Sequence record: AP019418.1 | DNA: 64,000 bases | Strand: one strand, 5' to 3' | Shown here: one piece after another, positions 1,335-44,131 of the stretch | Layout: the number at the start of each line of letters is the position of its first letter | How positions within the stretch are numbered: position 1 is the stretch's first letter | Position numbers and translations under genes: made by a program | Notes under the pieces: generated by a model | Database searches by the model: none | What the model was told of the DNA's origin: nothing | Seen by the model: the letters and a program-made list of their open reading frames with translations, nothing else

Positions 1335-1509
1335 TTAATCCTCATAATTAGAGCGCGATGGGTTTCCATCTATAAAATCAGTCTGTTCTAGTTGTGTTAA
1401 AATAAAAAGTCTGGTATTATGAGCTTTACGTAATACCCTTGTAACAGTCTATTGATAGAAATGCCAATACTGGCTTTTATGGGTAGGCATAGTACTAACA
1501 GAGGTCATC

Positions 1510-1800
1510 ATGCTCGGTTTGACTATTAAAGCCTTGCTCTTCGTTTGGCCATTCCTTAAGAGGGCTATCTTTGGTGATAGAACAATTAAGGAAGTGTTGC
1601 TGGAAAACAAACATGTCACGGCAATGTTAATCCTAGTTGTAATATTACTAGGTACCTTATTCATAGTGACTAGTGAGTTGAAGTCAGTTAAAGCAAGCAA
1701 CTGGGCCGTTAAAGCCGAAATGGATCGACTCAAGAAAATGACGCCTGAGAAGGCTGAAATGCTTGAGCGCCGCCGTCGTTTAAATGACTTGCTAAAGTAA
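1510..1800 (+). CDS. Small inner-membrane protein with TM helix and basic coiled-coil tail (i-spanin-like or holin-like)
   Basis: Hydrophobic AMLILVVILLGTLFIVT followed by a helical charged tail. GAGG RBS upstream. Confidence 0.7.
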   Translation: MLGLTIKALLFVWPFLKRAIFGDRTIKEVLLENKHVTAMLILVVILLGTLFIVTSELKSVKASNWAVKAEMDRLKKMTPEKAEMLERRRRLNDLLK

Positions 1801-1820
1801 GTACCAAATTGGTGGATCAC

Positions 1821-2222
1821 ATGTCAAGAAAGTTCTTTCTAATACTCCTACCACTTATCAGTGGCTGTGTTTATACGCCACATGAGTACCACACGCACAA
1901 CACGACTGTGGTCCAATATGAGCACTCCTCTTCTACAGATGATCATACATCTGTTGTTACAACTAAAGAAGAGGTAATACAAAAAGTTCTGCCTACACCT
2001 AAAAAATATAGTAAGGATACTAGTAAGAAGTGTATGGTTTTCGAACTACCAAGAAAGAAACCGGTACCGCCAACACCGATTATTACAGAGTTTATAGAAA
2101 CTCCGGAACAAATCGATATCTTGTTGACTGACTATATAAAAGAATTAAAGTCACATATTGTATCTGAGCGCGCTAAAATTGAGCAAGCATATGAAGAATG
2201 GCGTGCAAAGTGTGATGAGTAA
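1821..2222 (+). CDS. Putative lipoprotein (o-spanin-like)
   Basis: Likely start is ATG 1821: MSRKFFLILLPLISG|C, a signal peptide with lipobox. Pro-rich LPRKKPVPPTP and a helical C-terminus. Confidence 0.7.
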   Translation: MSRKFFLILLPLISGCVYTPHEYHTHNTTVVQYEHSSSTDDHTSVVTTKEEVIQKVLPTPKKYSKDTSKKCMVFELPRKKPVPPTPIITEFIETPEQIDILLTDYIKELKSHIVSERAKIEQAYEEWRAKCDE

Positions 2223-2277
2223 TTTACTTGCTAGAATTATTATCTAGTTTAGTAATCGATCACATGAGGAAACAATA

Positions 2278-3726
2278 ATGTCAGACGGTATGGTTTTATA
2301 CACTGACGGATCATTCCGACAGGGTAAAGCTGGTTGGGGTATTCATGGTTATACCTATGAAAATGTTGCAATGAAATCTAAAGCAGCCACCAAACAGCAA
2401 CCAACAGCTAAGGGATACTTAGATGTAGGTGCAGATGAGACATGCACTGTTTTAAATTATATTGATGCATTTGGTAGTGTAACTAATAACCCTACTAATA
2501 ATACAGGTGAGCTAACCGCTGCAATTGAGGCTTTCAAAATAGCTCATGAAGCAGATGCTCCTAGACTAACGATGCTCATGGATAGTGAATACGTTAGAAA
2601 AGGTATGACCGCATATTTACCCAAATGGATTAAGTCTAATTGGATTAAATCAGACGGCACGCCGGTAGCAAACCAGGACCTATGGAAACAGATGGTCGAA
2701 CTAAAAGCTAAATGGGAAGAAACTAATAAACCATTAAGCATCCAATGGGTCCGTGGACATAACGGAGACATTGGTAATGAAAAAGCTGATGCTAACGCTA
2801 AGCTTGGTTCGGGACAGAATAATGATAAGCCAGTGATGGTTTCGGTTAAAGGCGAGGAAATTAACAAACTTAAAAAACAAGTTGTTAATCCACTTATCCT
2901 CGAAAGTAGGTTACTCTTCGCCATTAACTCTGGAGAAGAACCAGATGGGTTCTATTACACCTATAACTTAGGTCGTATGCATAACTATGGTCATAAACCA
3001 AAAGACACTGCTAAAGATAAATTAGCTAAAGCTGATTTAATTTTAGGGCGTCGTATCTCTGAAGCAACCTTCAGTGTATATAAGGCAAATGAACCAGATG
3101 AGTATCTCCAGTTACTAATTAATATGCATACAGAAGCACTGGGTACTGAAAATCCAGAACTGGGTATCATCAATTTGGCAAACGCATATCGTGCAACCAT
3201 TCGACAGAAAATTGAATCCATGGGGCTACCTGCTCTAGTCGTATGGAAAGATATCAATGTTTTGTCGACGCCAACAGATGAACTCATTAGTCGGACTCTT
3301 AATCCACCACGTATGGCAAATGATGCTGTAGCTACATTTAATGTTATGCGCAGTCGTCTTGAAGATTACTTGGCTGGTAAACTTGGAGAGTCGGTTGGTA
3401 TTATTGATATTACCGAGCACTTCTTCGAGGAAGTCGCAAAGGGTAAGAAAGTTGGCTATCAACTACTTAAGACGATTACATCTAATACAGGCTTTGTAGA
3501 AGTTCCGATCACATTTAAAGATCGTAAGATAAAATTAAAGCTTGTATTAAATATCGATATTCCAAGTAGAAACCAATTAGCTCGTATTGGAGCTAATAAA
3601 GTTAAAATGGAAATTCTTGTAGTAGCTGAAGGCCCATATTCTTATTCATATTCAATTGTGTTCGTGACTGATGATGGTTCAGCTATTTATCAATCACCCT
3701 ATACACAATTTATTCTCCCAAAATAG
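2278..3726 (+). CDS. rnhA: Ribonuclease HI with long C-terminal extension (phiKZ gp155-like)
   Basis: RNase H motifs LYTDGS, NNTGELTA, MDSEYV and WVRGH..GNEKAD lie in the first ~190 aa. About 290 further residues are of unknown function. Confidence 0.9.
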   Translation: MSDGMVLYTDGSFRQGKAGWGIHGYTYENVAMKSKAATKQQPTAKGYLDVGADETCTVLNYIDAFGSVTNNPTNNTGELTAAIEAFKIAHEADAPRLTMLMDSEYVRKGMTAYLPKWIKSNWIKSDGTPVANQDLWKQMVELKAKWEETNKPLSIQWVRGHNGDIGNEKADANAKLGSGQNNDKPVMVSVKGEEINKLKKQVVNPLILESRLLFAINSGEEPDGFYYTYNLGRMHNYGHKPKDTAKDKLAKADLILGRRISEATFSVYKANEPDEYLQLLINMHTEALGTENPELGIINLANAYRATIRQKIESMGLPALVVWKDINVLSTPTDELISRTLNPPRMANDAVATFNVMRSRLEDYLAGKLGESVGIIDITEHFFEEVAKGKKVGYQLLKTITSNTGFVEVPITFKDRKIKLKLVLNIDIPSRNQLARIGANKVKMEILVVAEGPYSYSYSIVFVTDDGSAIYQSPYTQFILPK

Positions 3727-9478: not shown

Positions 9479-12400
9479 TTAAATAACAGCACCTTTGGAA
9501 ACTATCCAGTTAGTACCATCCCATAAGAGGGTAAGAACTGTTTTAGTATCACCTAGGTCATCTACTATTACTGGAGTACCATTGTTCCATTGTAACACTG
9601 CACTAGAAAGTGTTGGCATAGCTACCTTACCAAGCAATACAAGAACAGCTGTGATCATACGATCAACAGGTCCATTCTCTAGTGTAATGGTTTGGTTAGC
9701 AGCAGTTTGAACCCTATAGCACTGTTGGTTAGCTGGTGTTAGAGTTAAAGCTGTACCAGTGAATGTACTTGATTTTAGGCTATATGCATCGAATGATTTA
9801 TCTAGCTTCTTCCAAGTAATATTAGTACCAGTACGGCTACGTAGCCAATCACCATCAGCGGTTACATCATTATTCGGCCCTTGGAATAGAGTCCATGATT
9901 TAGCCGCAGCATTACGTAGGAATAGTTGTCCACTAGTAGCATCAGCTTGATCAACTATAATAGTTACAGGTGTCCATTTAGAACCACTAGCTGTTTTCTC
10001 ACGTACATAGTTAGTGCCATTAGCACCTTCACTAGGTACTTCACCAATAACTGCGGCTGGTACAGCTACCCATTCACCATTTTGCATACCCATTAGAGTA
10101 TCATCGGTTTGCAGAGGTGCTACATCAACCCAGTTACCAGCTACACGACCTTGAGGCTTAGTAGCTTGTGCAGTATCGCGTACTACATCTGAAGGAATTT
10201 CTGGGAATGTAATGGTAGCCCATTCAGTTTCACCCCCTGCAATACCTTTACGAACGTATTGTGCATTAACAACTGGACTAGGTACAGCATCAATGGCAGG
10301 TGTTGGTAATTCAATAGCAGTCCATTCAACAGCCCCGTCAGCGGTTGCTTTACGGCGACCATAGAAGACACCTACTTCAGCATCTACCACCTCATCAACA
10401 GGTAGTTCAGTCCAACCGAGTTTGTACCGAACCATTTTCTTATCGACATCTTCTGGATCGACTTCACTAACTGGAACTGACATTAATTTGTAGAATACAA
10501 CCCAGTTAGCATCTTTATACCAAACGGTACCAGTTTTGTCGATACACCAGTCACCACGATTACCATCGATAGAAGTGGGTGCAGTTTGACCTTCAGGTAG
10601 AATTACCCAAGAGGATCCACGTTCACCTTTCTGACCGGTTTTACCAGGGATACCTGGAACACCTTGTTTGCCCTCAGGACCTTCAGGACCCTGCGGACCC
10701 ATGGCTAAGACACCTAGGCTTTCCCAAGTAAATGTACCTTCAGTATCGATACTTACAAATACTTCTACTTGTCCTTCAGTATTGGTGCGAATGGCAATAC
10801 CTTTACCTACGTTATCAGCAGATGCTACTGGTTTACCAGCATCATCACCAACATAGATAATTAATAGACCACCACCTTGTTTACCTTCAGGACCTTGTGG
10901 GCCTTCGACACCCTGGATACCCTGCTCACCATTTAGATTAATTGGGCCGATATAGCCATCAATTTCCTGACCTTGGTAAGTATAGAGCATTGTACCTTCG
11001 TTAGTTTCAACCCAGTATGAATCACCAGTTACTAAGTCAGGATCAGTGTCTTTCTTTGGTAGTTGTGAAGCATCGGTTAAAACACCTTTAATGTTTAAAC
11101 CTTCACCCGGTTTACCTTGCGGACCTGCCATAATACCAATGCTAGTCCAGCGACTACCGTCCATGTTAACAAATACTTCGCCCGTGGACTTAACAGTATA
11201 TGCTTTCCATTGGTTATCGGCAAGTGCTTCTGGTGGGGTATCTTCAGGAGTGTCAATCGCTGCGATGATCTGGATAGGTTCACCAGCGGGACCTTGTGGG
11301 CCTTCTGGTCCCTCGGGTCCTTCTGGTCCCTGATCACCGTCTTTACCAGGTGCGCCATCTTCACCTTTAGGACCTCGATGTGTACCACTATTTACCCAAT
11401 TACCATCTATCTTAACAAATAAGGTAGATGTGTCTTGTGTGAAGTACGCTGCCTGATCAGGAGCATCTGCCGGCAGGGCTGCCTCATTGGCAACAGCACC
11501 AGTAATAACTACGTTCTTACCATGTAGACTGATTAACCATTCACCCTCAGTACCAGTGAAGCCATTGTCCAATGCTACTTGGAAAGCCGATTTACCTTGT
11601 GCCCCTGGTTCACCAGGTAGACCTTGTTCGCCATCTTCACCTTGCGGACCTTCAGGGCCCTGCGGGCCACGGAATGAACCCATGGCTGTCCATGAGATAT
11701 CAACAGTCGGATCTTGGCCAGTCAGTACATAAACCGTATTGGTGGAACGTACTGAAACACCTTGGTATTGTTCTACACCAGTGGTGGTTAATAGATCATC
11801 AGCAGTTTCAACTGCTTTAACTACTTCTAAGTTACGACCTTGTGGACCAGGTTCACCTTGTTTACCATCGGGACCCGGATCACCTGTATTACCTGGTTTA
11901 CCTTGTGGGCCCTCAGGGCCTTGGAAAGTACCTAGGTCTGACCATGCCCCTTTTACAAAGATGAATAGATGTTCTGGTTTACCAGCTTCCATAGTAACTA
12001 AGTATGCTTCTGATTCTTTAGCTACAGATGGATCAGGTAAATCAGCTGGTGATGGTAGTGAATCCTTAATGGTAAACGGCATTGCTGGTTCACCCTGAGG
12101 ACCTTCAGGACCAATTTCACCATCTTTACCTTGCGGACCCTCAGGGCCCTCAGGTCCACGTTCACCCTGTGGTGTAACTGGGAACCAATCATAGTCATCA
12201 ATAGTTGGATTCTCTGGCGGATTATTACCTGAGATAAGCATCCACGCCCAGAGTTGATTATTCCATGAATAAGCATCTCCAGGTTTATTACTTTCAGTCT
12301 TAGGTAATTCTAAGTTATTAGGCCAACGACCACGGATAACTAGACCAGTACCATCTGGACCACGAAGTGAACCTGTTTCAACCCAACGACCTTTTACAGG

Positions 12401-12760
12401 GGGGTCTTCATTACCTAGCGGTGATTCCCACACCCATAGCCGATCTTCAACGAACCAAGCATCACCGACATTATGCGTATCTAATGGTTTAATATCTTGT
12501 TCGAATGTTGCTAGATCAACATTAGCGATAATGTTAATAGCCGGACCAACTGGGCCAGGAGGGCCTTGTTCGCCATCTTTACCCGGCTGACCATCTTCAC
12601 CCTTTAATCCAGGTATAGTAACAGGATCAACGAAAGTAGTATTAAGACCCACCCCGGTAGAAACCGGGATGTGTCCATTAACTACAGAAGTGGGCTCATC
12701 AATTGATGATACCCGTTTGGGGAGTTCCCCGTTTACATAATCTTCAAATGCAGAAGCCAT
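9479..12760 (-). CDS. gp146: Collagen-like fibre protein (phiKZ gp146)
   Basis: 1093 aa. Several (G-x-y)n blocks alternate with globular repeats, followed by tandem foldon-like C-terminal repeats. Confidence 0.85.
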   Translation of the reverse strand: MASAFEDYVNGELPKRVSSIDEPTSVVNGHIPVSTGVGLNTTFVDPVTIPGLKGEDGQPGKDGEQGPPGPVGPAINIIANVDLATFEQDIKPLDTHNVGDAWFVEDRLWVWESPLGNEDPPVKGRWVETGSLRGPDGTGLVIRGRWPNNLELPKTESNKPGDAYSWNNQLWAWMLISGNNPPENPTIDDYDWFPVTPQGERGPEGPEGPQGKDGEIGPEGPQGEPAMPFTIKDSLPSPADLPDPSVAKESEAYLVTMEAGKPEHLFIFVKGAWSDLGTFQGPEGPQGKPGNTGDPGPDGKQGEPGPQGRNLEVVKAVETADDLLTTTGVEQYQGVSVRSTNTVYVLTGQDPTVDISWTAMGSFRGPQGPEGPQGEDGEQGLPGEPGAQGKSAFQVALDNGFTGTEGEWLISLHGKNVVITGAVANEAALPADAPDQAAYFTQDTSTLFVKIDGNWVNSGTHRGPKGEDGAPGKDGDQGPEGPEGPEGPQGPAGEPIQIIAAIDTPEDTPPEALADNQWKAYTVKSTGEVFVNMDGSRWTSIGIMAGPQGKPGEGLNIKGVLTDASQLPKKDTDPDLVTGDSYWVETNEGTMLYTYQGQEIDGYIGPINLNGEQGIQGVEGPQGPEGKQGGGLLIIYVGDDAGKPVASADNVGKGIAIRTNTEGQVEVFVSIDTEGTFTWESLGVLAMGPQGPEGPEGKQGVPGIPGKTGQKGERGSSWVILPEGQTAPTSIDGNRGDWCIDKTGTVWYKDANWVVFYKLMSVPVSEVDPEDVDKKMVRYKLGWTELPVDEVVDAEVGVFYGRRKATADGAVEWTAIELPTPAIDAVPSPVVNAQYVRKGIAGGETEWATITFPEIPSDVVRDTAQATKPQGRVAGNWVDVAPLQTDDTLMGMQNGEWVAVPAAVIGEVPSEGANGTNYVREKTASGSKWTPVTIIVDQADATSGQLFLRNAAAKSWTLFQGPNNDVTADGDWLRSRTGTNITWKKLDKSFDAYSLKSSTFTGTALTLTPANQQCYRVQTAANQTITLENGPVDRMITAVLVLLGKVAMPTLSSAVLQWNNGTPVIVDDLGDTKTVLTLLWDGTNWIVSKGAVI

Positions 12761-15129
12761 TATACTACTTCCTCAAGTTCGATTTTCATCAGTCCAGTGG
12801 TGTTGGACACAGCGTTTGCTGAGTCACAGTTATACCACTTATTGCCATCCTTGATGGTGTAGGTGTCAACTTGATTTGCATCATCCGCCTTATAAGTGAA
12901 GTTTAAGCTACCAGTAGAACCTTTAGATAGGTTACTGCAACGTAGTTTACCAGTATTGGTTACTTCAGTACCAATATCAGTTTCACGGTTCGGCCAAGCA
13001 GCCACACTTAGAGTGCGGAATACAAATCCACCTAGTACATAAGTACCACCATTTACACTATTAGCTTCAACACCAGCTAAACCTTTTAGAACCACACTGT
13101 TAAAATCGTAGGTTCCTTTAGGATCATCGTCATGTACTAGTAATGCACGTGTCCATACCTTACCAGTGGCATCAGATTTCCAATCCTCAGTAGCCCACTT
13201 ACCGCCAGGCGCATTCATGGCCGGAGCTGCACTTAGTTTCTGAGTAGAGGTTAAAGTAATGACATGACTTTGTACTTGGGTTCCAAAGTTACCACCTGAA
13301 CGAAGGCGAGCAGCAGGGTAGGTAACCGTCGCAGTAGGTGCCGCATTTGCAATAGCCACAACAGCAGTAGCTGTAGCTACACTACCATTAGCTGCACGTT
13401 TAGCAGTAATTAATAGGTTATTAGTGCTGTCGTTATAAGTACCTGACTTATAAGTAACTACCTTAGCAATTTCTGCTTCATTTGCACTGGTTATAGTAAG
13501 CTGATCATTTGGTGAGGAATAAACCACACTATCAGCATTAGATACCGTATTGGCTACAGTAGCAGTTTCACCTACTTTAATAGCACTTTGACCAGACGGA
13601 TAAGTTACTTGACCAATATTAACAACTGGGCGAAGATCGTTTAACTGCATAGTGTTAATTTTATCTTCGGAACCAGCATCACTGGAAGTAAACCATTCTG
13701 ACCATGATCCAGTTGATTTCTGAACACGTACACGGAAACCATATGCCTTAGTAGTATTACCACGATCAGCTACGTAAAGACCAGTAACCTCTAGTTCTTT
13801 AGTAGGTGCAACAGTACCACTACTTTCTTTCAGTGCACCAAAGTCAGCAATTTCGTATGCTACTATATTTTCATCAGTAACAACTTTAATTGCAACAAGG
13901 TCATCTTCTTTAAGTTCTGTTTGACCTAACGGATAACCGCCAGTAAATACAGCACTAGTAATATTAGCGGGAGTATCGGCTAATACCTTAGTAGTGAATT
14001 TAGCCCCATCGGCGTGTTCTACAACAATATCAGCATAACCTTCAGTAGTAGGTGCACCAAGATCAATATCGGCGGTAGCAATCCACATAGGTGGATTAAC
14101 GCCAGGAGTTACAACTGCATCTACGTTATTGATTTTAACACTAGGTACATAACTAGAATGTCCAGTTATTGCATCAACGATAACCCGAACATTACTAGTA
14201 GTCGATAGGCATGACTGTACGCTGTGCCCATCGGGGGTACGCACAATACTACCTACGTTCTGACTGGGGTCAGTTGCTTGTACATCTTTGACGAATACAC
14301 CGCCACTAATACCTTCATTTTTAGGAAGGTTCTTAAGATCAACGGTCGTTTCATCAACGCCTTCAACAATACGGATATTACCGTCATTCTTGAATGCAAT
14401 GTAATCAGTTAAACTACCAATCTGGAATTCACCATTGTCATAAATACGAATTTCAGACTCAGGTAATTCGGGTAATGCACCTTGCGTAGTGGGCGCAGAA
14501 GCGTTCTTTAGATAAGAATAACCTTCTGCTTCCATACGACCTTGTTCCATCATACGCTGAGGTATTTTATCACCAGCAGTTAAGTCGTCTTGATTTAGAC
14601 GCTTATCAAACAGGAAAGCAAAGTTATGGAAAGCAGCGTTGGATGATAATCCACCATTCTTGCCAGTTACACGCAGTACATCTTTAACTGTGTAACCTTG
14701 TTGATTTAAGAGCGACTGGAGTAGTTCAGCAGTCATGGTTGCATGCAGTGATGTTAACCATTCCTGTTCAGTACCTTGGAAACCGTTTTCCACAGCTACT
14801 TCATATGCACTCTTACCAGCATCACCTTTAAGGGATGCTATAAACTCTTCTTCAGTACCAACGAAACCTAGATCGACTGCGATTTGATAAGAAGATTTAC
14901 CTTTAAGCGAATCAAGCCATTCGGTTTCAGTTCCCTGGAAACCATTTTTAACGGCAATCTCGTACGCACTAAGACCGGGTGCTCCAGTCTGTAGTTTTGA
15001 CAGCAGAAACTTATAGTTATCGACTTGACCAGCTGCATCGGTATGAATTAATTCAATATACTCGCTATCGTTAAGAGTAGCTAGATCCGGCAGTTGACTG
15101 ATCTTGCCTTTGTCTGTAGCATTTGCCAT
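12760..15129 (-). CDS. gp145: Fibre/structural protein (phiKZ gp145-like)
   Basis: 789 aa. N-terminal KISQLP, three G(L/K)S(A/S)Y(E/Q)(I/V)AV..GF.GTE.E repeats, beta-rich T/V/A body; TAATG coupling to gp146. Confidence 0.8.
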   Translation of the reverse strand: MANATDKGKISQLPDLATLNDSEYIELIHTDAAGQVDNYKFLLSKLQTGAPGLSAYEIAVKNGFQGTETEWLDSLKGKSSYQIAVDLGFVGTEEEFIASLKGDAGKSAYEVAVENGFQGTEQEWLTSLHATMTAELLQSLLNQQGYTVKDVLRVTGKNGGLSSNAAFHNFAFLFDKRLNQDDLTAGDKIPQRMMEQGRMEAEGYSYLKNASAPTTQGALPELPESEIRIYDNGEFQIGSLTDYIAFKNDGNIRIVEGVDETTVDLKNLPKNEGISGGVFVKDVQATDPSQNVGSIVRTPDGHSVQSCLSTTSNVRVIVDAITGHSSYVPSVKINNVDAVVTPGVNPPMWIATADIDLGAPTTEGYADIVVEHADGAKFTTKVLADTPANITSAVFTGGYPLGQTELKEDDLVAIKVVTDENIVAYEIADFGALKESSGTVAPTKELEVTGLYVADRGNTTKAYGFRVRVQKSTGSWSEWFTSSDAGSEDKINTMQLNDLRPVVNIGQVTYPSGQSAIKVGETATVANTVSNADSVVYSSPNDQLTITSANEAEIAKVVTYKSGTYNDSTNNLLITAKRAANGSVATATAVVAIANAAPTATVTYPAARLRSGGNFGTQVQSHVITLTSTQKLSAAPAMNAPGGKWATEDWKSDATGKVWTRALLVHDDDPKGTYDFNSVVLKGLAGVEANSVNGGTYVLGGFVFRTLSVAAWPNRETDIGTEVTNTGKLRCSNLSKGSTGSLNFTYKADDANQVDTYTIKDGNKWYNCDSANAVSNTTGLMKIELEEVV

Positions 15130-15334: not shown

Positions 15335-16156
<822 letters not shown>

Positions 16157-16178: not shown

Positions 16179-16712
16179 TTAACTTTCTAGATAACGGATT
16201 TGACCATTTTCTAGATAACGTGCTGCACCATTCTCTAATAGTCGGATAGTATCTGACGTATCATCAATACGTTGGATTAGTATATTACATTCACCATAGT
16301 AAGCATAGCTACTCGACATAGCTACTATCGTGTATGGAACAACATCCGTAGTTGCATTGATTGGTGTTGTATCAAATGAAACATCATCTGGACCAAGCTT
16401 CCAACCTCGTGAACGGTTAATTTCTTCAGCAATTGCTTTAGGTGTTAAAGTACCAACTATCTTAAGGATAGATCCTTCACCAATAGCACGTGGATCAGCA
16501 AAATCTAACCGACGGTAAGTTAACATGTACTTAATGTCAGTAGTGATGTCGATCATTTCAATAAATGTACGTCCAGGCTCAATCGTGGTTGGACTAAAAA
16601 ACATATCTTCAAATGTAACTGTTTCTGGTTTGAAGTTTATTTTTAAATCATCCCGCGCAAGTTTTACTAGCGCATTCCTCGATGCCATGTCATACGGAAA
16701 GATATCCTGCAT
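16179..16712 (-). CDS. Probable virion structural protein with YRRLDF domain and C-terminal RxLENG repeats
   Basis: 177 aa. Ends IRLLENGAARYLENGQIRYLES; domain resembles the ORFs at 34256 and 35137. Confidence 0.75.
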   Translation of the reverse strand: MQDIFPYDMASRNALVKLARDDLKINFKPETVTFEDMFFSPTTIEPGRTFIEMIDITTDIKYMLTYRRLDFADPRAIGEGSILKIVGTLTPKAIAEEINRSRGWKLGPDDVSFDTTPINATTDVVPYTIVAMSSSYAYYGECNILIQRIDDTSDTIRLLENGAARYLENGQIRYLES

Positions 16713-16794: not shown

Positions 16795-17190
16795 TTATTG
16801 CATAAGCATCTTTATTAATTCAAAGGTACCTTGCACAATAGTCTTTAACACATTGGCACTTTCTTCTGACATAGGTGCACCAGATAAAACTACCATAGTA
16901 GATACTGATGCCCCAATAAGAGTAACGCCACCAGCTAATACCAATACCGCATTACGGTAAGAATCTTTAGCCTTCACTTCAGCAATTTCCCGGCTGAGAA
17001 TTTTATATTGAAGATCTGAATCGGTAATAGCATAAATTAGACTAAGTACTTCCTCACCAGTTATACTTAGATTTATACGTTGTTCCTTTTCCAATACACT
17101 ATTCAAATAGGTACGTATCTTCTTTCCATAGTCTTTAGAAGAAGATAAAGGATTACCATCGATCTCAATCAGAACGTCCTCTAGGGTCAT
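16795..17190 (-). CDS. Membrane protein, holin/antiholin candidate
   Basis: Likely start is ATG 17190 with a GGAG RBS. Hydrophobic AVLVLAGGVTLIGASVSTMVVL; follows the spanin pair. Confidence 0.55.
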   Translation of the reverse strand: MTLEDVLIEIDGNPLSSSKDYGKKIRTYLNSVLEKEQRINLSITGEEVLSLIYAITDSDLQYKILSREIAEVKAKDSYRNAVLVLAGGVTLIGASVSTMVVLSGAPMSEESANVLKTIVQGTFELIKMLMQ

Positions 17191-17527
17191 GACTATTCTC
17201 CAAATTACGTTGACGTTCGTTCCATTCACGCAATTTGTCTACTTGGATATTACATAGTCCAAGTGCATCAGTTTGTAAAAGCCAATGTTCGGTCATAAGT
17301 AAGAAACGTGCTTCATTCTCATCAGTAACCCCAACAGCTTTATATCTATCTAATGCATTGATGATCTCATTAGCTGTAGGTGGGGCTTCCACATCGCAAG
17401 GGAGAAGTAAACTACTTGGGATTGCAACTGGTATTTTCACGGGAGGCGGCACAGTAGTGCTCGTACATCCGTTTAGCAATAGCATTAATAGACTTATTAA
17501 TGTTATCTTTTTTTGTGTCAGTTTCAT
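17165..17527 (-). CDS. o-spanin (Rz1-like lipoprotein)
   Basis: Start 17527: MKLTQKKITLISLLMLLLNG|C lipobox, then Pro-rich VPPPVKIPVAIPSSLLLPC. Overlaps the 3' end of the upstream TM gene. Confidence 0.8.
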   Translation of the reverse strand: MKLTQKKITLISLLMLLLNGCTSTTVPPPVKIPVAIPSSLLLPCDVEAPPTANEIINALDRYKAVGVTDENEARFLLMTEHWLLQTDALGLCNIQVDKLREWNERQRNLENSHDPRGRSD

Positions 17528-17918
17528 GTTTAATCTCAGTAGTGGTGCTTTCCCCATTAGTTGTTTTAGCTTTAACCTCAGGCCATACAGGTGGAGTATA
17601 TCCACGACCTGATAAACTAATGTACTCATCAATCACCTCAGTGCGTGATTGCGCCTGCTCTTTTTGTATCTCTTTCTTTTTAGTAATTAGTTCAGCTTGA
17701 ATTTTATCGGAGATACGATCTGATTCAATCCTAACCTTTTCTGCCGCTTCATAAGATTTAATTTTTCCAATTAAATCTGTAGAGCGAACAAGTTCCGTCT
17801 CATAACTATTTTTGTAATATATGATACCAATTAAGGCACCTATCAGAATAACTAATAGTAACCATATATGCAATGGCACGCTACCAATTATTTTTCGTAT
17901 ACCTGCTAATAGGAACAT
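17412..17918 (-). CDS. i-spanin (Rz-like)
   Basis: N-terminal TM WLLLVILIGALIGIIYY, long coiled coil and C-terminal Cys residues; overlapped by the lipoprotein gene. Confidence 0.8.
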   Translation of the reverse strand: MFLLAGIRKIIGSVPLHIWLLLVILIGALIGIIYYKNSYETELVRSTDLIGKIKSYEAAEKVRIESDRISDKIQAELITKKKEIQKEQAQSRTEVIDEYISLSGRGYTPPVWPEVKAKTTNGESTTTEIKHETDTKKDNINKSINAIAKRMYEHYCAASRENTSCNPK

Positions 17919-34252: not shown

Positions 34253-35128
<876 letters not shown>

Positions 35129-35136
35129 GGTGTGTA

Positions 35137-35580
35137 ATGGCTGATACAAGAGCTGAATTAGTAGCTGCTTGGAATGTGGCTAATAAACCTAAAGATAATA
35201 ATGGTAAGCCTAGGGATTTAACTGTTGATGATGTTGAATTTATAGGGACTGATACATTCTTAGCAACTGGTACAAATGCCAAAACAACAATGAGAGCGAA
35301 GACCAGTTCACTTTATTTTAAAGGTGAGACAGTTATTTACTTTAATAGACGCTCTTTACCAGAGTACTGTCTTGGTATAAAAGTACCGGGTAAACCAACT
35401 GACTATACTGATAATTTAGAAGTAGCTGAAAAATTAAGAGATGTTTACGGTATTCCATTTATTATAGATGAGATACAACCGCAACCTATTACTGGGAATA
35501 CGGTTACGATACATCCATACTTTAATAACTTGTCGTGGATACCAACAATACCAGTAACTCTTGAATTTGAAAGCAGTTAA
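35137..35580 (+). CDS. Virion structural protein (gp126-like)
   Basis: 147 aa; YFNRRSL motif of the same family. Confidence 0.7.
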   Translation: MADTRAELVAAWNVANKPKDNNGKPRDLTVDDVEFIGTDTFLATGTNAKTTMRAKTSSLYFKGETVIYFNRRSLPEYCLGIKVPGKPTDYTDNLEVAEKLRDVYGIPFIIDEIQPQPITGNTVTIHPYFNNLSWIPTIPVTLEFESS

Positions 35581-41806: not shown

Positions 41807-41887
41807 TTACTCTTCTAACTTCCGGGCATTACCGTCTTCCAAATAACGGATAGTCCCATTTTCTAGATAACGGTAACCCTTTCCAGC
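41807..41887 (-). other. Putative readthrough extension of the major capsid protein (26 aa)
   Basis: In frame after TGA (41888-41890): AGKGYRYLENGTIRYLEDGNARKLEE-TAA. No start codon; contains a 21-bp hairpin. Confidence 0.7.
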
Positions 41888-44131
41888 TCACGGCTTAAGA
41901 TCAGCAAGCTTACCGTTGAACTGAGTTTCGCCCATGACTTTCTGGAAGCCAGTGATCTTGAACTCTAGCGCGAACGGAATGTTGTTGACGTGTAGGTTGA
42001 ACGGAATGGCCGCGATTTCGCGAGTAACCTGGTGACCACCACGAGTGATCGGTAGGTCAGCGATAACAGTAGATACGTAGAAGAACTGGCCCCAGGAGAG
42101 GATGTCGTTTTCTTGTTGTACTGCGCGGGTCGGAATTACAACTAGCTTACCATCAAATAGCTGGTTGTTGGTGGAAACGATATCGTACTTGAGATAAGCA
42201 CCTAGAGTACGGTCGTCACCTTTAGTCATTAGATAGTTAGCAATCTCTTTGTCGGAGCAGAAGAGATACATCGGAGTTTCATCCTGGTTACCGGAGATAA
42301 CACGGAAGGCAGCTTCAATGTTGGAATCACGGTGAGCCGGGAATAGCTCAGCTTTAACACAGTTTAGGATCGCAGCGCAAACGTCGTCCCAACGATCTTT
42401 AGACTTGATGGTGTCGATGACTTTCTCAAGATCTAGTTCTTTGTAACGATAGGTCGGACGCATTACAGCGGATAGTGCACCTTCGATGATACCAAACTTC
42501 GGACGGTTGTAACCATTGTGTACAACTTCACGTAGTTGAGCAAGGTAGTTAAGCATGCGCTTAACAGCGTTGTTGCTGTTACGGATGTTGGTGTTAACAG
42601 TTAGAGCTTTAACAACCTCACCCGGACCTTCATCGGTCATGGTGTCCATCGGTAGAGTTACAGGAGCGTGCATCGGGATCGGATGACGGAACTGTAGTGC
42701 ACGGGTCTGTAGTAGGTGACCACGCTGACGACGGTTAGTGTTGGTGAAGCGAGTATCTAGTTCGAAACCGATAACAGCTAGGTCAGTTAGCTGATCTAGA
42801 ATAGCTTTAACAGCCGGGTCAGCATTATCCATTACCTGGCCATCTTCGTTTAGAACTTTATCGACGTAAGTGTCGGTAGCACCAAACTTAGAATCGCCTT
42901 TGGATAGGCTGATAGTACCACCAAAACCAACGCTTAGACGTAGGCTTAGTTTAGCAGTCTTAAGGTCGTTAATAACGCCATCAGCTGAACCGTCGATGAA
43001 AGTGGTATCGCCACTAACAACAAGGTCATCGCTATCGAAACGGATAACTGCGTTCCGGGTATCACCAACTAGATCGGGCTGGAACACAGCGCGAGGTAGA
43101 CGGTCAACCTTGAACTTAACAACTTTACCGCCGAGTAGAACGAATAGGTTCTTTAGACGACCAGCCGGATCAATGGTGTCAGAAACTTCAAGCATGCCAC
43201 GCTGAATGAGTAGGTTAGCATTGGAGTTACCCATTAGATCAAGACGTACGTTCGCTTTTAGCGGAGCAGTAGTGATAGTTAGGTTCTGCTCGTTCTTGAT
43301 GGTGTACGGAGGAACAAGAGCCGGGTCTACGAAGAAGTCAGCATTGGAACCAGCCGGATCTAGGGCAGGAATTAGTGCAATGCTTTCGTCGTCGAGGATG
43401 GAAGGATCACGATAGGCTTCTACCATGTTCACTTCTTCGTTATCCATCTTAACGCCGGATACTTCGTGGTAAACGTCTTTCATTACAGCGATGTAAGGAA
43501 GAACCTGAACAACACCACCTTCAATCGGGTTGATAACGGTGGTCGGATAGATACGCTCAGCGAATTCATCCTGACGGCTAGCAGCTAGGTTATAACCAAT
43601 AGTTACAACACGGAAATCACGCTGTGACTTCTCGTTATAGTTCTCTAGGCCAACACCATTTTCGAATACTTGAATGCCACCAGCAGGGCCATTGAACTGA
43701 TGCTGTACAACCTTAACATGATCTTCATTAGAAGCTTTAGCTTTGGTAATACCACGTAGTGCACGGATATATTTAGTTTCATCAGCACAGGCGATAGCAG
43801 CCATGGTAGCAGCAGTGATTTGGTTCTCACGGACACGTTCTTCACGAGCACGTACTTGAGGATCACTGGAACTTACTCGTTCGAAACCATAGTCGTTAAC
43901 GAGCATTTGCATTTTGTTATAAATTGCAGCGGCATCTTGAATGTCGGTAGCTTGCACGGTACCGAAGTTTTCATGTGAAATGCTGCTAATAAGGGAACGA
44001 CCTTGACTAACAACGCTGTCATTTAGACCAATTTCACTTTCTAGGCGGCCAATGAAATCTTCCATTGAGAAGACTTCGTAATTCTTTTCGCCTTTGTGTT
44101 TAAACAGTTCTCTTAGGGCATGTACGCTCAT
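41888..44131 (-). CDS. gp120: Major capsid protein (phiKZ gp120)
   Basis: 747 aa. GVGLE163|NYNEK matches the known maturation site; strong high-expression codon bias; AGGA RBS. Confidence 0.95.
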   Translation of the reverse strand: MSVHALRELFKHKGEKNYEVFSMEDFIGRLESEIGLNDSVVSQGRSLISSISHENFGTVQATDIQDAAAIYNKMQMLVNDYGFERVSSSDPQVRAREERVRENQITAATMAAIACADETKYIRALRGITKAKASNEDHVKVVQHQFNGPAGGIQVFENGVGLENYNEKSQRDFRVVTIGYNLAASRQDEFAERIYPTTVINPIEGGVVQVLPYIAVMKDVYHEVSGVKMDNEEVNMVEAYRDPSILDDESIALIPALDPAGSNADFFVDPALVPPYTIKNEQNLTITTAPLKANVRLDLMGNSNANLLIQRGMLEVSDTIDPAGRLKNLFVLLGGKVVKFKVDRLPRAVFQPDLVGDTRNAVIRFDSDDLVVSGDTTFIDGSADGVINDLKTAKLSLRLSVGFGGTISLSKGDSKFGATDTYVDKVLNEDGQVMDNADPAVKAILDQLTDLAVIGFELDTRFTNTNRRQRGHLLQTRALQFRHPIPMHAPVTLPMDTMTDEGPGEVVKALTVNTNIRNSNNAVKRMLNYLAQLREVVHNGYNRPKFGIIEGALSAVMRPTYRYKELDLEKVIDTIKSKDRWDDVCAAILNCVKAELFPAHRDSNIEAAFRVISGNQDETPMYLFCSDKEIANYLMTKGDDRTLGAYLKYDIVSTNNQLFDGKLVVIPTRAVQQENDILSWGQFFYVSTVIADLPITRGGHQVTREIAAIPFNLHVNNIPFALEFKITGFQKVMGETQFNGKLADLKP

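Follow-up and report, generated by a model that had tools for sequence, protein, structure and literature searches.

Recoding yields minor capsid forms in which a fraction of the subunits is extended C-terminally, as in Q-beta A1 (UGA readthrough) and T7 10B (frameshift). Short N-terminal fiber anchors are likewise well established, namely the adenovirus fiber tail, which docks on the penton base, and the N-terminus of T7 gp17, which docks on gp11/gp12; anchor domains are also found in the branched receptor-binding proteins of Klebsiella phages.

For the DUF7941 proteins of jumbo phages, a 2026 preprint on phage Goslar shows filaments of Goslar gp22 and predicts tail-to-domain docking for this protein and for gp23; head-to-tail oligomerization through a tail or linker is predicted there for other DUF7941 members, not for gp143 of phiKZ. 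A 2026 structural atlas of phiKZ places gp127 in the star lobe of the baseplate and describes six copies of the endolysin gp144 as structural wedges in the neck of the virion, and gp143, gp126, gp145, and gp146 are not located in the published maps. The product of gene 143 has been described as a holin-specific lysis regulator (PMC12894885, published in 2026), which in plasmid systems brings gp142 triggering forward by 10-15 min and which blocks a truncated holin. That study places the modeled contact on gp143's first globular domain and discusses the holin regulators T4 RI, RIII, and P1 LydB, whereas the C-terminal repeat, the DUF7941 domain, and the virion association of gp143 go unmentioned.

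The present analysis concerns a window of 64,000 nucleotides (record AP019418.1), which is 100% identical to Pseudomonas phage phiKZ and whose minus strand corresponds to the plus strand of the phiKZ RefSeq record. We consider it rather probable that gp143 is an adaptor, in which a DUF7941 anchor domain would be joined to a docking tag for the fiber-like protein gp145, and that a copy of this tag behind the major capsid gene would offer the same socket.

Results

Genomic context and DUF7941 domain of gp143

The 177-residue gp143 (PHIKZ143; positions 16179..16712, minus strand), a short-form DUF7941 protein with a C-terminal tag that is annotated as a virion structural protein, is encoded on the same strand as its neighbors, which follow in the order: spanin genes gp141 and gp141.1 (17165..17918), holin gp142 (16795..17190), gp143, endolysin gp144 (KZ144; 15335..16117), gp145 (12760..15129), and gp146 (9479..12760). 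The placement of gp143 between the spanin/holin genes and the endolysin gene in the initial annotation is thus correct, with gp142 on one side and gp144 on the other, and the order spanin, holin, gp143, endolysin is kept in phiKZ and in 18 relatives. Because gp144 is also a neck component, the "lysis cassette" is interleaved with virion genes; the RefSeq notes, moreover, describe gp143 as a "structural protein" and both gp145 and gp146 as a "structural head protein." At gp143, the coordinate offset between the window and NC_004629 is 6 nt different from that at gp120, which indicates a 6-nt indel in the window relative to NC_004629 between positions 16712 and 41888.

A domain layout shared by gp143 and two further proteins had been noticed by eye. 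These proteins are gp127 (34256..35128, plus strand), a long-form DUF7941 protein of 290 residues that comprises an N-terminal domain, a linker, and a C-terminal domain, and gp126 (35137..35580, plus strand), which at 147 residues consists of the DUF7941 N-terminal domain only, with no linker; both lack the tag. Profile comparison bore the shared layout out, since phrog_2935, phrog_1037, and Pfam DUF7941 each match all three proteins. The phrog_2935 profile matches gp143 with an E-value of 4.6e-46 (residues 1-177), gp126 with 2.5e-35, and gp127 with 8.8e-15; the phrog_1037 profile gives 1.2e-4, 5.4e-10, and 6.4e-65, respectively; and Pfam DUF7941 (PF25613) gives 18.3 bits for gp143 (E 0.0017), which is below its cut-off of 27 bits, 38.9 bits for gp126 (E 9e-10), and 98.2 bits for gp127 (E 7.3e-28). 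Pairwise BLASTP between gp143 and gp126 was not significant (E 5.7). The hhalign comparison of gp143 with gp127 (E 0.0017) pairs YRRLD of gp143 with YQRLD of gp127, and AEEINRSRG..GPDD with its gp127 counterpart, which are the motifs that had been noticed by eye.

The AlphaFold2 model of gp143 has a mean pLDDT of 89.9, with values of about 95 across residues 10-150, and its sole significant Foldseek match in the PDB is the N-terminal domain of gp127 from the phiKZ outer baseplate (9xqd_0; E 6.6e-7, target-normalized TM-score 0.68). This assigns residues 1-150 (16263..16712, minus strand) to a globular DUF7941 N-terminal domain. The profile matches, the hhalign alignment, and the fold match together indicate that the homology of gp143, gp126, and gp127 is real. 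This membership is not new, as the Goslar preprint already names the three as the DUF7941 proteins of phiKZ. In the four IMG/VR genomes of relatives that were examined for this purpose, the gp127-type and the gp126-type gene are each present once, and a single gp143-type gene occurs in all 18 of the 18 phiKZ-like relatives searched; among the three types, the gp143 type alone bears a tail in the relatives. Two related phages differ in their DUF7941 complement: PhiEaH1 encodes an octad-tagged short protein (1486-2034, plus strand) as well as a differently tailed one, and PCH45 encodes a long-form protein (1471-2322, plus strand) with a degenerate tag, in which Ile or Val stands in place of Arg.

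The C-terminal octad tag

The initial annotation had ascribed three R-x-L-E-x-G repeats to gp143 alone among the three proteins. The restriction to gp143 holds, but the count has to be amended: the protein ends in IRLLENGA-ARYLENGQ-IRYLES, that is, in two full R-x-x-E-N-G-x-x units followed by R-Y-L-E-S, a truncated third unit that lacks the Gly. All carriers have the tag in this form, two octads plus a truncated third. We therefore define the tag as two octads of the form x-R-x-x-E-(D/N)-G-x followed by R-x-x-E, with 0-3 residues between its end and the stop; in gp143 it spans residues 156-177 (16182..16247, minus strand), and this stretch is a putative fiber-docking peptide. Across 37 gp143 orthologs (33-53% identity), Arg157, Glu160, Arg165, Glu168, and Arg173 are invariant, which places them with the most highly conserved residues of gp143, and an alignment of 38 tags shows an invariant succession of R, E, G, R, E, G, and R. 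In the gp143 model, the tag has pLDDT values of 68-81 and forms periodic β bridges.

A scan of the whole 280-kb phiKZ genome with a strict DNA pattern for two octads returned two sites only, namely the end of gp143 and record positions 120527-120586, behind gp120; a reversed two-octad pattern, used as a control, had no match in five genomes. A protein search by word index, run with the C-terminal 40 residues of a gp143 ortholog, yielded 22 candidates, all of them orthologs, and so tells nothing about further carriers; a search of the ESM Atlas with the tag gave no usable match; and a tag profile had no match among PDB sequences at E-values up to 10, so that the solved structures are without the tag. 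Our literature searches found no description of the tag, of the plug motif introduced below, or of the capsid extension, and searches with the motif strings gave noise only.

Tag carriers in other phages and the adjacent gene

An exact scan of IMG/VR with a DNA pattern for two octads and the next Arg returned 114 stretches with 119 in-frame matches. In 84 of these 119, the motif starts at most 26 residues before the stop, mostly at 20-22 and in 83 matches at 19-24, a distance that exactly matches three units placed at the extreme C-terminus. Most stretches lie on contigs of 5-60 kb, and the octad tag is not special to jumbo phages. The carriers are unrelated to one another, and they include (i) J-like tail-tip proteins (phrog_1101, Pfam Phage-tail_3); (ii) the major tail-tube protein (Pfam Phage_tail_2); and (iii) proteins of phrog_6305, phrog_376, phrog_8917, and phrog_23052, as well as small ORFs. 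The earlier proposal of a portable RxLENG module, placed constitutively on one virion protein and by recoding on another, is thus borne out for its portability and for the constitutive copy on gp143; the capsid copy would be expressed by recoding (see below).

The ORF that starts between -30 and +34 nt from the stop of the carrier usually begins with M..KKISxLxxAxxLxGxELxExxQ, a motif that we call the plug. A strict plug pattern (K-I-S-x-L...E..E..Q) occurs in 36 of 73 such downstream ORFs, compared with 12 of 2817 other ORFs at the same loci (Fisher p 6e-52), and the bodies of the plug-bearing downstream ORFs are of the fiber type, with matches to collagen, YadA head, and tail-fiber PHROGs.

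Adjacency can also reflect ordinary tail-gene order. As a control, we sorted 80 relatives of one J-like carrier family by their type of tail. Where the J-like protein has an octad tail, the next gene has a plug start (four of four loci); where the octad tail is degenerate (LRTETGDE LVSEAGDY LLIE), the next gene starts with KLSQLP (five of five); a GWG-type or GLGF-type tail is followed by a different, equally conserved N-terminus; and carriers without a tail are followed by none of these starts. The strict plug pattern is absent from the loci of this family other than those with octad tails. The type of tail and the N-terminus of the next protein thus co-vary as a pair, and this within-family control, which covers few independent lineages, lessens the concern about gene order. 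A second matched pair was seen at 51 J-like loci, where the carriers have GWG-type or GLGFRLGEELGG-type tails and the genes after them start with a PNLGL / GPNTGLL...GEGHY motif; the GWG-type tail and the PNLGL-type N-terminus may form an alternative docking pair.

gp145 as the candidate partner in phiKZ

In phiKZ, a fiber gene with a plug likewise lies near the carrier, with the endolysin gene inserted between the two. A plug profile that had been trained only on plug N-termini of non-jumbo phages, with chimalliviruses left out, was run against the 141 ORFs of the window, and its sole match was gp145, a fiber-like protein of 789 residues, at residues 8-28 (GKISQLPDLATLNDSEYIELI; E 5.3e-5), within the N-terminal plug region (residues 1-42; 15004..15129, minus strand). 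A plug regular expression matches the N-terminus of gp145 as well, and the same profile matches the gp145 orthologs of the relatives.

The order gp143-type gene, endolysin gene, gp145-type gene is found in 18 relatives, and in G019, G022, and PhiEaH1 the fiber gene directly follows the tagged gp143-type gene. In PCH45, the plug-type gene is divergent and adjoins the DUF7941 gene with the degenerate tag. In Goslar, the DUF7941 tails and the capsid extension that were examined lack an octad tag, and the first 50 kb gave no plug match.

The suggestion that the tag binds gp145 or gp146 is therefore favored for gp145 by comparative genomics, namely by its plug start, by the co-variation of tag and plug, and by its being the only profile match, but not for gp146, a collagen-like fiber protein, which has no match to the plug profile among the window ORFs. 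Nor is there evidence of this kind for gp119. These comparisons support the view that the tag is a portable module and that gp145 is its best candidate partner, and from them we infer that the tag may bind the plug of gp145. In RefSeq, gp145 has the product name "tail sheath," which goes with phrog_15433. This name looks wrong, since gp29 is the sheath protein of phiKZ and gp145 has fiber-type repeats.

The putative capsid extension

The second copy of the tag, which the initial annotation had recognized as the same element, lies at 41807..41887 on the minus strand, in frame directly after the TGA stop (41888-41890) of gp120, the major capsid protein gene (41888..44131, minus strand). It consists of 26 codons and a TAA stop, encodes the tag YRYLENGT IRYLEDGN ARKLEE, and is followed on its 3' side by a terminator hairpin. 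In all 14 of the 14 relatives with at least 63% identity in the major capsid protein, as well as in G011 and Noxifer, the capsid gene likewise has a TGA stop, behind which 24-30 in-frame codons encode these three units, whereas relatives with a TAA capsid stop have no conserved extension, yet keep a tagged gp143 ortholog.

A chance or nucleic-acid-level origin of the capsid copy was considered and rejected, because the amino acids are kept while the codons differ among relatives. A conserved stop and a conserved in-frame peptide are thus found together in phiKZ and its relatives, and from this conservation we infer that the gp120 TGA is leaky and that the extension may be translated. The gp120 C-terminal arm has been modeled to residue 747 in the capsid paper, where it lies at the hexamer center and contacts the outer protein gp244 at pentons; given this position and this contact, the extension is plausibly exposed. 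The tags of gp143 and of the capsid extension have only the core R/E/G pattern in common, which argues against recent gene conversion between the two copies, and within the octad class there was no fine co-variation between them (permutation p 0.88).

The extension is not always an octad tag. The capsid gene of Goslar also ends in TGA, and its in-frame extension (43319-43438, minus strand) copies the tail of the phage's own gp23, a short DUF7941 protein (16862-17404, plus strand) whose tail is unrelated to the octads. In RP31 and PhiEaH1, the capsid extension likewise copies a non-octad short-DUF7941 tail of the same genome; all three copied tails are of the L..N.ADGF type. When the extensions were scored against the tails, the own-genome tail ranked first of 18 each time, which indicates that capsid extensions track the tail of the same genome. 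Separately, on IMG/VR contig 3300043122_000192, the capsid TGA is followed by more than 60 in-frame codons that resemble a bacterial Ig-like (Big_2-type) domain, which suggests that readthrough may append other modules to the capsid protein.

This tracking of the DUF7941 tail also fits a second explanation of the tag, which we regard as unlikely overall: that it is a head-to-tail docking peptide for another DUF7941 N-terminal domain (that of gp143, gp126, or gp127), so that the capsid extension would anchor chains of DUF7941 proteins rather than gp145. The tag does take the place that the linker after the N-terminal domain has in DUF7941 proteins of the long form, and the predicted tail-to-domain docking of Goslar gp22 and gp23, together with the gp22 filaments, accords with such chains. 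However, small phages commonly bear the octad tag on tail proteins from families other than DUF7941, and the tag and the N-terminus of the next fiber gene vary together; the non-octad tails of the Goslar type are of a different sequence class.

Discussion

Since the tag ends virion proteins that are encoded right before fiber genes with a matching start, it is most likely a socket for gp145-type fibers. In the adaptor model that we favor for gp143, the globular domain (residues of about 10-150), with its gp127-like fold, would presumably anchor the protein to the virion, where its position is a presumed one, and the portable tag in the last 22 residues would bind the N-terminal K-I-S-x-L-P plug of gp145. 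The three units of the tag would match a trimeric fiber. Readthrough of a leaky capsid TGA would further allow a minority of gp120 subunits to display the same socket at the capsomer centers. The globular domain of gp143 would then affect holin timing as a separate or additional activity. Gene 143 carried five insertions in a TnSeq study and is thus dispensable, whereas no insertions were recovered in gp145 and gp146, which means that gp143 cannot be the sole anchor of an essential fiber.

Not every carrier has a plug gene beside it. The tail-tube proteins (Pfam Phage_tail_2; about 160 residues), found with a tag at 11 loci, are followed by a gene for a 146-residue protein without the plug motif, so their partner, if any, is encoded elsewhere. 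These carriers lend themselves to the reading that the tag has no dedicated protein partner and is a surface element that would self-associate, cap chains, or bind cell-surface sugars or ions weakly. Consistent with that reading, the tag is always on surface-exposed virion proteins, and AlphaFold2 gives the tag by itself a semi-ordered, periodic β structure; we nevertheless judge it quite improbable, because it leaves unexplained both the tight, co-varying link between the tag and the plug of the next gene and the constant number of units found at the very C-terminus. A role of the tag in lysis control, with gp143 oligomerizing on or binding the cytoplasmic domain of the holin gp142 and the capsid copy coupling capsid production to lysis timing, would suit the reported advance of holin triggering by 10-15 min, the block of the truncated holin (PMC12894885), and the location of the gp143-type gene in the lysis cassette of 18 relatives, but it is very improbable, since the published model puts the contact on the first globular domain and not on the tail, unrelated phages have this tag at the end of tail-tip and tail-tube proteins whose genes lie far from lysis genes, and the fiber gene directly follows the gp143-type gene in G019, G022, and PhiEaH1.

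The proposal of a docking tag for gp145 assigns a concrete function to the best conserved stretch of gp143, which is discussed neither in the lysis-cassette paper (PMC12894885) nor in the DUF7941 preprint, and it suggests an attachment site for the unlocated fibers gp145 and gp146 in a heavily studied model phage. It would also account for the capsid gene's keeping a leaky stop and a conserved peptide. Beyond phiKZ, it points to a general modular rule of fiber fastening in many phage groups, which would aid the annotation of fiber and carrier genes. More tentatively, and with some doubt on our part, tailed phages might hang their fibers by a few interchangeable pairs of tag and plug (octad with KISxLP; GWG-type with PNLGL-type), nucleus-forming jumbo phages might set the number of head sockets by capsid readthrough, and gp143 might link fiber or virion assembly to holin timing.

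The described systems share some of these features and lack others. With the DUF7941 proteins gp127 and gp126 of phiKZ and gp22 and gp23 of Goslar, gp143 shares the N-terminal fold, the YxRLD and helix-G..DD motifs, and virion association, and like Goslar gp23 it is a short form with a C-terminal tail. It differs from the other members in that its tail is the octad tag, which is also found outside the family, in that its gene adjoins lysis genes, and in that it scores below the Pfam cut-off; gp127, for its part, continues into a linker and a C-terminal domain, and gp126 is tailless. As for holin regulators, gp143 resembles T4 RI and RIII and P1 LydB in shifting the time of holin triggering and in its location in the lysis cassette, but it is a DUF7941 virion protein, has a tag in common with tail proteins, and is dispensable in TnSeq.

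The putative capsid readthrough resembles Q-beta A1 and T7 10B in combining a conserved recoding site (here a TGA) with a conserved in-frame peptide, but the phiKZ extension is only about 26 residues long and copies a tag that is hard-coded on another virion protein. Finally, the proposed pairing of tag and plug resembles the adenovirus, T7, and Klebsiella-phage anchors in the conserved N-terminus of the fiber, in its variable distal parts, and in docking on a virion protein, which is what we propose here; it differs in that the proposed socket would be a repeat peptide of roughly 22 residues, which forms the very C-terminal end of many mutually unrelated carriers and is exchangeable with other types of tail.
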